A stretch of 64,000 nucleotides of DNA from Stylophora pistillata (Eukaryota). The stretch lies in contig NW_019217892.1 of NCBI RefSeq assembly GCF_002571385.2, forward strand, positions 384,156-448,155. Reading direction: 5' to 3'. Below are positions 32,149 to 41,307 of the stretch, in pieces (within the stretch, counting starts at the first letter, position 1; every line of letters starts with the position of its first letter). The position numbers and the translations under genes were made by a program. Under the pieces are notes generated by a model. That model made no database searches. It saw only the letters and a list, made by a program, of their open reading frames with translations, and had not been told where the DNA came from.

Positions 32149-35100
32149 GCAAATGGAGGAATTGTGGGTTGTGTGTGGGTTTATATGCATAAAACGGAGC
32201 TAAGTTATGAGCTTGGAAAAGAAATAGAGAAAGATGTTTTTTGTCTTGTAAAGAGCATGGGACAAAGAAAAAACTCCGAGTTCCCACAAGGAATCGAACT
32301 ACAGACCTTTGGATTCTGCACTGTGAAGCTCTACTACTGAGCCAAAGAGACTCCATGGTGAGCAAGGCCCATTAGGAAGTTCATATATTACATGTGTCCT
32401 GCACACTTCCAGCAAAAAAAGTATAGGCTGGGAAACAGCTTGTGCGCTAACAAAGACATTACCCAAACCCAATCTGATTCTATTTCAGTGTTTGACAGCA
32501 TTAAGACCATGGAGAAATCTGGTTGCTAAAGGAGTAGCTGAAAGTATCGGCCCTGAGAGATCCTTCTACTCATGGCTCAACTTTGTCTTCAACAGGTAAA
32601 TGATGAGGGCTAAAAGAGCCAATAACTTTTCAGCTTTTAAAAATATGTTTTCGGTGTTATTTTTCATACACTTAGGAATACTGCAATAACCACTGTGGGA
32701 GTTTGTGTGTTTGTTCATTGTCAACAATGTCAGTAATATAAATATTGGTAGGAGACACAGTTGGTGTCAAAAGTGATAGATATTGAAATTAATGCTTACA
32801 ATCAGGAAACCACCCAAGTGAGATTTGTGCCCAATAATATTTTAATCATTGAAGGAAGAAATGCATTAAAATCATCTCTATGTGCTATATTATTTCAATG
32901 TTTTAGTATATACTAAGGCATCTATTCACCTCAGTGTCAGTGGTAAGGGATGGAAATTCACCTTGTGGCTTTGTCGTTAGGTGAATATCCGCTACTACCC
33001 ACCTCCTTTTTAGTGAATAGTTAATTATTTGGGTCATATTTTCGGTATGGTATATGATAAGATTACTTCTGTATGGTCAATGCATTTACTAACAGTTTAT
33101 AATACTTAGATAAAATGACACATACAATGGTTAACATCAAATGGTTGGTGAGTGATCTTGTCCAGTCCACTGTCCAAGGTCACTTTCATCTATCAGACCT
33201 TTACCAATTATGCAAGAAATGATACTCTGTAATTTTGTAATCTTTCAGAGTTGATGAAGAGCGTATTAAAGAATTTGGAGCAGACAGGTACTATAATCAA
33301 TAAAATCCAGCTACTGACTCCATTTTGTGGGTCTGAACTTGGAACAAATCCTCCTTGCAAAGTTGACTCCAGGATTATTATCCTTTAGTTAGTAAGAAAA
33401 TCTATAATTTAGAGCAGCTCAAGAGTAACAGAAATTCATTTTGTTTGAGTTGTTGTAAACTTTGTATTAGATGAAAAAATGTTTATTCTGCTGAAAATAC
33501 TTGACATATTTGGTTCAAATTCCCCAACCCACCCAGGCAAGGTTCAAATTACCCACCCCCTATTAATGGACAATTGCCAAATGCCTTTCTTTCTTTATCT
33601 ATTTGAGTGAATGTTTTCCCTTCACATGACATTTTATTTTTAAAGATTGTAATGACTGGTTTTTTCTTAAAGGAAAATCTTAATCTAATTCTTATCTTAA
33701 TTTGACTGCCTCCCGGTTAGCTCAATTGGTTAGAGCGCCGGATTGTGTTGCACGGGAGGTTGAGGGTTCGAGCCCTGGCCGAACCAATACTCATGGTNNN
33801 NNNNTGAGCTTCTCTGCGACCATCTCAGCTTTGCTGTGTTGTCAATCAATAGAGTACCTCGCCAAGGGATGCTGCCCATGTGCCAAGCAGCATTGTCATC
33901 GTAGGTGCAGCCCCACAGTTAAACTGTGGATATACCCGTGTTCAGGCTATAGGCATATATATATATTAATTTAAGAATATTCTCTCTTGCACTGTGTTAG
34001 TAGACTTCTTTATGGTATTTACCAACAGTACAAGACTAACTTGAAAAAAACCCACTAAAAGAAGGCACCCATTTACAGTACTTACAAACAGTACAAAACC
34101 CCACCAAAAGAGGGCAGCTATTTTTATGGTATTACACAGTAACAACATGTTGCAAGTTATTAACACTTACATTATCAACTTACGAAGCTAGTACTCCTTT
34201 GTTCAACAAAGCAGGGTTCCAACTCAATGAACCATAGATTACAATTCTGGGACACGTGTAATCTTTCTTTCAATGTCTTGTAGTAGATTGTTCACCTTTC
34301 GTGCTGGTATAACATTTATAAAGTTAAAAGGTGAATGTGTGGAAGATAAGGCATAGTGAAGTTTAAATACGAGTTTAATCAGTGGTGTTATCAATTTCAA
34401 AACCATCTGGAGAAAAAAAGTATTTGCCTGCATGTAAATTTTTTCCATGAAAGTTCTTTCATTTTCTTCAAATATCTCTTGTTTGTGTATCTCTTTGACA
34501 ACACCAAGAACCACTATCTGACCCTTGATCCTTCGCATCACTGGGCCACCTGAGCAACCAGGCCTGAGTGAGCAATGTAATGTCACTAGTGGCTCTTTAT
34601 AGAATTCTTTCTTGTACCCAGACACCTTGCCATCTACAAATAGCGCTGTTTCCCCCATATGGGTAGGTGGGTAGCCAAAACAGAAAACTGACTGGCCTAT
34701 TAATAAGTCTAAACAACTCAACTTAAATGGAAAAATTCCGGTGTCCTTAAAATTAAGCTTAGGACAGTGAAGTAAAGCTAAATCATTTTTAAAATCAACA
34801 TAAACATCTTTAGAGGGCAGTTGGTGAATGGCTTCATTAGAAATGAATACTCCGTACTTCTCCTTATCATTGAGATATTTTCGGAGCACATGTTCATTGG
34901 TAATAATTAAACCATCGCCGATGAGAAATCCAGTTCCATATGAAATCGTTGTTAGTTTTTTGGCCTCTTCATATTCCGTCAGAATGCCACCCCTTTCATC
35001 GTCAACGTTCTTTCTCTTTTCGGCATCGCCTTGTCCCGGTTTTGGGTATCTGTCAATCAGCTTTTTTTCATCAAACTCATCAATAGCAGACTTAATGTCA

Positions 35101-39600: not shown

Positions 39601-41307
39601 TCACAAGGCTTGGCTCTGATCAAAATTAGACTTATTAAGTATTGCTTGGTTTTCATTGTTATATGCCATTTTTAGAGAGTGTAAAAACTGAATCACCTTT
39701 TCTGCAGGTATAACATTAACAAAATTGAATGGTGAATGTGTTCCTGTCAAGGCTTCATTAAGTTTTAATACAATCTTAGCAACTTCAGCACCACCTGAAA
39801 CAGTATCTCGATCCCTAGAAAGCTTTTCTTGTTCCTTTTGAGTCAAGATGTCTTTAATGTGCTTCTCTTTAACCATCCCAAGAACCTGTAATTGATTCTT
39901 AACTCTACACATAACTGGGCCACCTGAGCACCCAGAGCTAAGCGAGCAATGTAGCATCACTAAAGGACCACCAGACATTCTTTCCTGGTGTCCTGAGACA
40001 CTGCCATTCACAAAAAGAGCTGTGTTTCCATGGTGATGAATAGGATAGCCAAAGCAAAAGACTGGCTGACCTGTTTTCAATGACTCTGGGAACAATTCCA
40101 ATGGATGTATTTTACTATTCTCTACTGAGTTAAGCTTGGAACAATGCAGGAGAGCTAAATCATTCAGGTTATCATCATCTACATCATCAATGACTACATT
40201 ACCAATGACTTCATTACAAATATGGATTTCACAATTACCTTTACCACTATTTTCAAGAAAAGTTTCAACCACGTGTTTATTGGTAATAATATGATAATCA
40301 TCGTTGGTAACTCCAGCGATGATAAATCCAGTTCCATGTTCAATTTCAGGTTTGGTGGCTGCTTCAAATTCATTCCTAATGTCGGCTCTTTGTTTATCAA
40401 CCTCGTTTTTCTTTTCTAGATCTCTATGTCCGTTTTGTTTTGGGTACTTGTCAATGAGCTTCTTGTTATCAAATTTAGCAATAGCTTTATGGATATCTGA
40501 GATATCGTAAGGAAAATTGTCTGCACCTTCCCTCGGGGGTAAAATGACAGTGTCTATTGGAAGGGTACCTGCAAAACAGTTCCTCAACATACGTTCAGCC
40601 ACTCCACGGGGATATTTTTGTTGTGGATGTTTGTGGTACTCACTGCGCATACTTTCAGTGTTTTTATCGATCAAATCTTTCAATTCTTTCGAGCCAGGAC
40701 CTTCGTCTTGTGCATATTTGGTGAGCTGCTTTTTGCGATCAATGTCCATGTAGGCTTCATAAATGTCAGACATAGTGTAATAAACCTTTAGTCCAACCCT
40801 GTGACTAAGTATGTCTGAATCTCCTGCAAATTTCCCAGCAAAGCAATCTCTTACTCTTCGCTGAGCGACAATCCAGGAATATTTCCGTCGATTGTTGGGG
40901 TCTTCGAATTCTTTCAACTCCCTTGAGACTGCGGCTCTTCTTTCTTTGATTTTCGCCTTTATTTGCTCCGCATCTGGTCCATCTTCTGGGTCTCTTTCTA
41001 CGTAAAACTTTTCATCGAAGTCAGAAAGAGCCCCAGCAATATCAGCAATGCTGTACGTTCTCTTCAGTTTGGAAATATTGAGTTGGTGATCATTCCTTTG
41101 ATCATAGAGCACGAGCGGATCATACAAGCGCCACGTATCAAGTCCTTGTGGAAGCGGGCTACCATAACAATTCTGCACTCGTTTAAGAGCATCTTCCCGA
41201 CTGTATTGAGGTAATTCAAGTGGATTTGGATTTCTTAACACTTTAACCCTAACACAAGCATTGAAAGCTGTCCGTCCATCTTCACCAAGAACATCATCGC
41301 TATACAT
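39601..41307 (-). CDS. Intronless 568-aa paralogous trypsin-like serine protease with three novel repeats
   Basis: GTGFII, ITNKH345V, D383LALL, FCFGYP, SGCS461GGP. Colinear with the 34239-35891 ORF, including an identical YSWIVAQRRVRDCFAG and THSPFNF.NVIPA.KV. Confidence 0.9.
   Translation of the reverse strand: MYSDDVLGEDGRTAFNACVRVKVLRNPNPLELPQYSREDALKRVQNCYGSPLPQGLDTWRLYDPLVLYDQRNDHQLNISKLKRTYSIADIAGALSDFDEKFYVERDPEDGPDAEQIKAKIKERRAAVSRELKEFEDPNNRRKYSWIVAQRRVRDCFAGKFAGDSDILSHRVGLKVYYTMSDIYEAYMDIDRKKQLTKYAQDEGPGSKELKDLIDKNTESMRSEYHKHPQQKYPRGVAERMLRNCFAGTLPIDTVILPPREGADNFPYDISDIHKAIAKFDNKKLIDKYPKQNGHRDLEKKNEVDKQRADIRNEFEAATKPEIEHGTGFIIAGVTNDDYHIITNKHVVETFLENSGKGNCEIHICNEVIGNVVIDDVDDDNLNDLALLHCSKLNSVENSKIHPLELFPESLKTGQPVFCFGYPIHHHGNTALFVNGSVSGHQERMSGGPLVMLHCSLSSGCSGGPVMCRVKNQLQVLGMVKEKHIKDILTQKEQEKLSRDRDTVSGGAEVAKIVLKLNEALTGTHSPFNFVNVIPAEKVIQFLHSLKMAYNNENQAILNKSNFDQSQAL

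Follow-up and report, generated by a model that had tools for sequence, protein, structure and literature searches.

In a stretch of 64,000 nucleotides (nt) from the stony coral Stylophora pistillata (RefSeq assembly GCF_002571385.2, contig NW_019217892.1, positions 384,156 to 448,155 of the forward strand), which we call the window and number from its first letter, two intronless genes, A and B, encode serine proteases of the HtrA fold that each carry three tandem copies of a repeat module of about 90 residues. The original prediction, made from the letters of the window without database searches, had taken the two genes for a paired, sensor-gated intracellular protease system, possibly immune and acquired by horizontal transfer or retroposition. 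The follow-up reported here is computational. The A/B family is genuine and transcribed and had not been characterised before; its enzyme is of a known kind but contains a new domain. As far as the libraries used here go, the repeat is an undescribed domain, so far known solely inside this coral protease.

Two proteases with complete catalytic triads

Both genes lie on the minus strand, colinear and with uninterrupted open reading frames (ORFs) of the predicted lengths (Table 1), and their products are 49% identical over the full length. In a Pfam scan Trypsin_2 is the sole domain, found in the C-terminal half (E-values 2.3e-18 in A and 2.7e-15 in B). Its scores of 58-68 bits pass the Pfam cut-off of 27.6. 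The catalytic triads are complete at the predicted residues (H334/D370/S447 in A, H345/D383/S461 in B), and the GTGF, TNxHV, DLALL, GYP and GCSGGP motifs were all found in both proteins. Across 83 family members the triad histidine is kept in 77, the aspartate in 79 and the serine in 81. Judged by these residues, the protease of A and B looks active. The GCSGGP motif had been called unusual; it is present in A and B, but it is a minority subfamily variant of the usual HtrA motif GNSGGP, the residue preceding the catalytic serine being N in 66 of the 83 members and C in 15.

The absence of a PDZ domain and of a signal peptide was likewise borne out. Pfam detects no PDZ domain in A or B at E up to 1, nor in nine homologs at E up to 0.1, and no STAND NTPase, reverse transcriptase (RT), metallo-beta-lactamase (MBL) or other partner domain, that is, no Pfam domain besides Trypsin_2, in A, B or the homologs. 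Targeting was judged from hydropathy, not from a dedicated signal-peptide predictor: no hydrophobic N-terminal segment is present (the top 12-residue hydropathy within the first 50 amino acids (aa) is about 1.0), and both N-termini are acidic. Since a signal peptide is missing, the family members are probably cytosolic. A trimer prediction with three copies of B residues 320-568 scored 0.59, one control already reaching 0.43.

With HtrA, DegP, DegS and HTRA1 (MEROPS S1C; Trypsin_2, PF13365) the two proteins have in common the chymotrypsin fold and the His-Asp-Ser triad with a GNSGG-type motif. They differ from these enzymes in having neither a PDZ domain nor a signal or targeting peptide, in the replacement of loop LA by about 290 residues that form three tandem novel domains, and in a second helical insertion near the C-terminus. 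Against the NCBIfam model degP_htrA_DO they reach only 20-40 bits, far below its cut-off of 416.

Table 1. Features of the protease genes, their surroundings and two short paralogs (window positions unless a contig is named)
Feature	Position	Strand	Description
Gene A	34239..35891	(-)	550-aa intronless HtrA-fold serine protease; uninterrupted single-exon ORF; Trypsin_2 match
A N-terminal helix and first protease-barrel strand, aa 1-25	35817..35891	(-)	homology to B aa 1-25
A repeat 1, aa 26-132	35496..35816	(-)	repeat hidden Markov model (HMM), 1.8e-36; Smith-Waterman z-scores
A repeat 2, aa 133-222	35226..35495	(-)	repeat HMM; Smith-Waterman
A repeat 3, aa 223-312	34956..35225	(-)	repeat HMM; Smith-Waterman
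A protease core and C-terminal helices, aa 313-550	34239..34955	(-)	H334, D370, S447
A codon 422 (K422*)	34626..34628	(-)	AAG in the window, TAG in a same-species contig; ends before Ser447
Gene B	39601..41307	(-)	568-aa intronless paralog of A; uninterrupted single-exon ORF
B N-terminal helix and first barrel strand, aa 1-28	41224..41307	(-)	AlphaFold2 model, alignment, short paralogs
B repeat 1, aa 29-136	40900..41223	(-)	repeat HMM; Smith-Waterman
B repeat 2, aa 137-229	40621..40899	(-)	repeat HMM; Smith-Waterman; also modelled alone
B repeat 3, aa 230-319	40351..40620	(-)	repeat HMM; Smith-Waterman
B protease core, helical insertion (aa ~484-527) and C-terminal helix	39601..40350	(-)	H345, D383, S461
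35-bp stretch of B repeat 3	40483-40517	(-)	absent from same-species RNA contigs; deletion allele
Candidate interferon-stimulated response element (ISRE)/interferon regulatory factor (IRF)-type element GAAAGTGAAACT	35959..35970	(-)	79 nt upstream of the A ATG, 12 nt upstream of the TATA-like box
TATA-like box TATATA	35942..35947	(-)	56 nt upstream of the A ATG; aligned with TAAATA in Pocillopora damicornis
Promoter block TCACGTGAC, E-box- or cAMP-response-element (CRE)-like	36022..36030	(-)	TCATGTGAC in P. damicornis; TCA[C/T]GTGAC
Leucine-rich repeat (LRR) gene between A and B	36750-38600; exons 37059-37230, 37929-38018	(+)	conserved; opposite strand to A and B
Pinin	27490-31135	(-)	flanks the protease locus
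Fucose-1-phosphate guanylyltransferase (FPGT)	49455-55656	(-)	flanks the protease locus
NRDE-2 homolog exons	553-5481	(-)	
M14 zinc carboxypeptidase exons	10512-11210	(+)	
Short paralog	contig C1351, locus 5635-6729	(+)	N-terminal segment and protease, ~95-aa insert
Short paralog	contig C404, locus 3565-4686	(+)	N-terminal segment and protease, ~95-aa insert

A repeat array inserted in the protease fold

That each protein holds three genuine repeats, as had been proposed, is confirmed by alignment and by the repeat HMM: within-protein repeat pairs score 6-22 standard deviations above shuffled sequences in Smith-Waterman alignments, with 0 of 200 shuffles as high. The predicted 16 identical residues of repeat 2 are the run YSWIVAQRRVRDCFAG, found in both A and B. 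The cysteine that had been described as invariant is kept in 82-83 of the 83 family members for each of the three repeats; it belongs to an R-x-R-D-C-[FY] motif that closes the first helix of the module. Copy number varies within the family. Among the first 122 members scanned with the six-repeat HMM, 85 proteins have three copies, 24 have four and 13 have five, and a wider repeat profile matches up to six stretches per protein.

Repeat profiles, which the original prediction had proposed to build, matched no characterised domain or family in the libraries searched. Of 27 repeats compared with Pfam at E up to 1, no two match the same family, the repeat profile finds nothing among PDB sequences at E up to 10, and Foldseek with the model of a single repeat gives best E-values of 4.3 in the PDB and 1.4 among the viral structures of BFVD. 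Neither the triple nor the single repeat has a usable match in the ESM Atlas. A 27-repeat profile, run exhaustively with HMMER against 1.84 billion cluster representatives, matched 86; of ten matches scanned with Pfam, nine carry the repeat followed by Trypsin_2, and the tenth, a pangolin protein, is a low-complexity false positive. Apart from this spurious match, no repeat outside the family was found among these 1.84e9 proteins. Database entries label the members 'serine protease', 'hypothetical' or 'uncharacterized', and no description of the family was found in literature on Trypsin_2 in corals, on HtrA LA insertions or under the locus tags. Since the Pfam, PDB, Foldseek and ESM Atlas searches returned no match, we consider the repeat domain undescribed in the libraries used.

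The place of the array in the protein was read from the structure that AlphaFold2 predicts for B on the basis of 83 homologs, with a mean predicted local distance difference test score (pLDDT) of 81. The model opens with a helix (residues 8-17) and a strand (18-25), continues with three similar modules, in each of which a short strand and a helix lead over a loop to a second strand, a helix and a long helix, and enters the protease barrel from residue 321; a second helical insertion (~aa 484-527) precedes the last strand, and the C-terminus is helical. It superposes on solved HtrAs over ~190-200 residues, the alignments beginning at model residue 1-12 and that to HTRA1 (3nzi_A) spanning model residues 1 to 548, and the family profile matches HTRA1 at 8.8e-12; this agrees with the Pfam result and with the predicted HtrA/Trypsin_2-like character of the protease. 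Since the aligned residues lie mostly in the barrel past residue 320, we take the N-terminal helix and strand as the first elements of the HtrA domain, which would put the 290-residue repeat array at the position of loop LA.

Short paralogs from the same genome (364-373 aa) tell the same story from sequence. They have in common with B its residues 2-23 (54.5% identity) and the protease, and between these two parts lies a different insert of ~95 residues, in which the repeat HMM is silent even at E 10; they may represent the ancestral form that preceded the repeats. On the model and these paralogs together, the repeat array is very probably an insertion between the first and second strand, at the HtrA loop LA position. 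The original prediction had the repeats as a domain in front of the protease, but an N-terminal fusion of this kind is rejected on the HtrA alignments and the short paralogs.

The locus, the family and their origin

Pinin and FPGT flank the protease locus in S. pistillata, and the order FPGT ... protease ... Pinin recurs in P. damicornis (Pinin flank) and in another coral assembly (both flanks), so the microsynteny is conserved across genera. A is 75.5% identical to P. damicornis pdam_00012003 and has the same neighbours; since position and identity agree, we regard the two as orthologs. The seven homologs of other corals that were compared with B are 42-48% identical to it. The LRR gene between A and B, whose exons are 95% and 89% identical at the amino acid level to another coral's locus and which we take to resemble ATP synthase subunit s / DMAC2L, is a conserved gene unrelated to the proteases. 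Two other corals have one protease gene at the locus within the flanks fetched, and the second coral assembly has no protease gene in the interval that corresponds to B, between FPGT and the LRR gene. The DNA similarity of the A and B loci ends at the coding sequence (CDS). Because other corals have a single gene here, the LRR gene lies between the two and their flanks are unlike, A and B look like an old tandem duplicate and not a two-gene system; by comparison of these loci, B is an old extra tandem copy and A the conserved syntenic gene. The predicted paired system is rejected on this synteny.

Elsewhere in the genome (398 Mb in 5513 contigs) the family has expanded further. A tandem array on contig C49 (617000-685000) holds at least 10 family copies on one strand. 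Three of them are open, with frames 684, 739 and 698 aa long that contain four repeats apiece, and several others are interrupted by stop codons, a picture that looks like birth-and-death evolution. Beyond S. pistillata, named family members come from P. damicornis, P. verrucosa, Oculina patagonica, Desmophyllum pertusum, Porites lobata and Montipora foliosa; among the hits with an organism name, the family is restricted to stony corals, as judged from sequence matches.

The genes might also have been acquired recently by horizontal transfer, from bacteria or from a virus, or have arrived as cargo of a mobile element. Such an origin was considered in the light of these data. It would account for two intronless genes among intron-rich neighbours, and the strongest HMM matches of the protease domain outside Pfam are indeed to bacterial defence proteases: PADLOC profiles gave RT-Protease_XI (1e-15 to 1e-18), then LmuA and Avs1b. 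These scores are, however, about those of Pfam Trypsin_2 and above those of the curated HtrA models, a pattern that, at the level of profile scores, shows generic Trypsin_2 character and not membership. In the genomes of 185,579 prokaryotic species a pattern scan gave 202 matches, none of them confirmed by tblastn as a bacterial or archaeal relative, and only two proteins of 137-437 aa among 5.8 billion match the protease domain, a fragment from the same species and a Desmophyllum sequence. The repeat has no relative among the viral structures of BFVD, the FPGT ... Pinin order is kept across genera, and the neighbours are ordinary host genes (NRDE-2, M14 carboxypeptidase), from which we take the contig to be coral nuclear DNA. 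Against mobile-element cargo, the A and B flanks share nothing past the CDS and no terminal repeats were seen. Taken together, we think a horizontal or mobile-element origin very improbable, contrary to what had been proposed; the retroposition named beside it found no positive evidence, every family member seen being a single open frame.

The bacterial proteases are of interest as a comparison all the same. Avs1b, Lamassu LmuA, Hachiman trypsin-MBL and class XI RT-proteases are the best non-Pfam matches to the A/B protease domain (E 1e-9 to 1e-18), and in such systems, according to a recent report, the protease is inactive until a sensor part is engaged (10.1101/2025.09.03.673762), a general logic that A and B would share. 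Only the protease part matches: A and B lack the STAND NTPase, LmuB/SMC, RT and MBL components, their neighbours are ordinary coral genes, no close bacterial relative was found by the searches above, and the candidate sensor is a coral-specific repeat. In animals, FAM111A and FAM111B are Trypsin_2 proteases with roles in replication and a proposed antiviral link, in which ubiquitin-like (UBL) domains and a PCNA-interacting (PIP) box stand ahead of the protease (PMC9798293). A and B resemble them as intracellular animal Trypsin_2 proteases with a non-catalytic N-terminal region, and are set apart by the described architecture: the UBL domains and PIP box precede the FAM111 protease, whereas the coral repeats are inserted within it.

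Expression, alleles and a candidate role in defence

The proximal promoters of A and its P. damicornis ortholog align, and the ISRE-like element is kept in position as AAAAGTGAAAC; the P. damicornis gene has a second, perfect distal site, GAAAATGAAACT, at -177. Immune cell types of Stylophora express IRF1/2 and IRF3/9 (PMC8162421), and control of A by IRFs is plausible from these sequence features.

Ten contigs from public runs of the same species carry B at 99.2-99.7% identity. Towards their far ends they jump across two genomic segments, and what aligns there coincides exactly with exons of the neighbouring LRR gene (38018-37929, then 37230-37059); because introns of that gene are spliced out, we consider the contigs RNA-derived. 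They are colinear with B, with no intron; four have their 5' ends at 41337-41343, 30-36 nt upstream of the ATG, and an AATAAA lies 103 nt past the B stop. Transcription is predicted to start near 41340 for B and near 35915 for A. The LRR gene is convergent with B, and the unstranded contigs join both. Of the words sampled from 34100-41900, 61-71% occur in polyA RNA runs. Transcription, which had been named as a check, was thus found for B, on RNA-derived but unstranded contigs; for A the sole contig found is unspliced and may be DNA.

The contigs also reveal polymorphism. One allele of B lacks 35 bp of repeat 3, and the frameshift that results divides the gene into two ORFs, of 265 and 297 aa; the deletion is present in 7 of 7 contigs aligned to the window, and 10 of 10 fetched contigs call the 297-aa ORF together with a separate upstream ORF. 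The 297-aa split product is indexed in 61 blocks of the sequence collection, and the exact A and B products were not found among the contig-encoded products on record. In A, a same-species contig has a stop at codon 422 (Table 1). Loss-of-function alleles of both genes segregate in the species.

Purifying selection, earlier argued from the identical residues of repeat 2, stood up to a test with the ratio of nonsynonymous to synonymous substitution rates (dN/dS). Between A and its P. damicornis ortholog dN is 0.132 and dS 0.432 (dN/dS 0.31), with similar values in the repeats (0.26-0.31) and the protease (0.38), and paralog pairs range from 0.33 to 0.57 (A versus B, 0.33). Selection is purifying but weak to moderate, which fits a fast-evolving multi-copy family.

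In classical HtrAs, PDZ domains sense ligands. In the family described here the PDZ domain is absent and loop LA has turned into an array of folded, cysteine-bearing domains, and because of this the most economical reading, by analogy, is that the array may regulate the active site. It would take over the regulatory role of LA and the PDZ domains, controlling access to the active site or its conformation through a bound partner or its redox state, and would keep the protease off, or recruit substrate, until the repeats are engaged; possible triggers are the binding of a ligand or of a multivalent target, or an altered redox state of the conserved cysteines. For E. coli DegP, inhibitory contacts of LA at the active centre and a redox-active disulfide that affects activity are reported (PMC4339722); the likeness lies in a cysteine-containing element at the same position of the fold. 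DegP is periplasmic and its LA a short loop that holds a single disulfide, while that of A and B is an array of folded domains with one invariant cysteine each in a protein that has no signal peptide; the likeness would be functional only.

For A, an IRF-induced, cell-intrinsic defence or stress protease appears to be the likeliest role, because Pocillopora has kept the ISRE and IRFs are expressed in immune cells of corals, and a cell-intrinsic defence role fits A because of the ISRE, the expansion of the family, its fast evolution and the polymorphism for null alleles. As a candidate role of A drawn from sequence, this immune part is tentative, and we would put it somewhat short of an even chance. 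The explanation as a whole, a coral HtrA-fold family in which the repeat array at the LA position is regulatory and A is an IRF-induced defence or stress protease, we hold to be evenly poised between right and wrong. A bolder version would credit stony corals with a class of cell-intrinsic immune effector of their own making, a cytosolic HtrA protease that is induced by IRFs and gated by lineage-specific, ligand-sensing domains in the inhibitory LA loop. It would be an independent animal counterpart of the bacterial anti-phage trypsin-like proteases that are coupled to sensors, with copy-number and null polymorphism kept by host-pathogen conflict; we regard this version as doubtful.

Several observations weigh against the explanation as a whole. 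The ISRE-like site is at neither B nor five other paralogs, only at A and its ortholog, and the 12-mer has 2 matches in the window against 0.55 expected, a count that 10 of 100 shuffles reach. RNA over B may be antisense read-through from the convergent LRR gene, since the contigs do not show strand. Null alleles of both genes imply that A and B are dispensable in at least some genotypes, so neither is essential. The restriction to stony corals rests on few named hits, so the taxonomic range given above is a lower bound, and a fold match of the repeat may have been missed because the confidence of the single-repeat model is middling (pLDDT 77).

The promoter statistics would also suit an ordinary, non-immune cytosolic protease of corals, employed in quality control, development or symbiosis, with the repeats as a scaffold for substrate binding or oligomerisation and the ISRE-like site either fortuitous or used by another GAAA-binding factor. 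HtrA proteases are classically quality-control enzymes, and dN/dS is below 1 in all domains, with no positive selection at such resolution. Housekeeping proteases, on the other hand, seldom show such copy-number expansion, so many disrupted copies, null alleles and dN/dS of 0.3-0.57, and the ISRE-like site is kept in position beside a TATA-like box in a second genus; we judge the non-immune reading unlikely, if the most serious of the rivals. Another possibility is that the copies in the window, and B in particular, are expendable products of birth-and-death evolution that are turning into pseudogenes and have no present function of their own. The frameshift allele of B occurs in RNA contigs of many samples and at least two run series, A has its K422* allele, several paralogs in the genome contain stops, and the proteins compared include no ortholog of B that exceeds 48% identity. 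Both ORFs in the window are intact with complete triads, though, and A and its Pocillopora ortholog are open with dN/dS of 0.31 over a dS of 0.43, A versus B giving 0.33, which leaves decay as an improbable account.

To our knowledge, coral immunity has mostly been inferred from homologs of vertebrate genes, and we know of hardly any lineage-specific effectors. The family offers a concrete candidate for a coral effector, an active-looking protease with three to five copies of a new domain at the site of HtrA auto-inhibition, and the natural null alleles of A and B could be used in association with disease or bleaching phenotypes. If the proposed mechanism is true, it would exemplify a loop LA grown into a regulatory module of several domains that stands in for PDZ domains. 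Should the family turn out to serve housekeeping, its domain is still unannotated and would merit an entry in Pfam.

Two minor observations concern the surroundings of the family members. On contig C1351, which holds one of the short paralogs, an open frame of 831 residues (2792-5275, minus strand; an ORF of 827 aa from its ATG) is an artefact of a long run of N read as X. In the window, minisatellites with units of 15 bp and 20-24 bp lie at 42130-42454, ~0.8-1.1 kb upstream of B.

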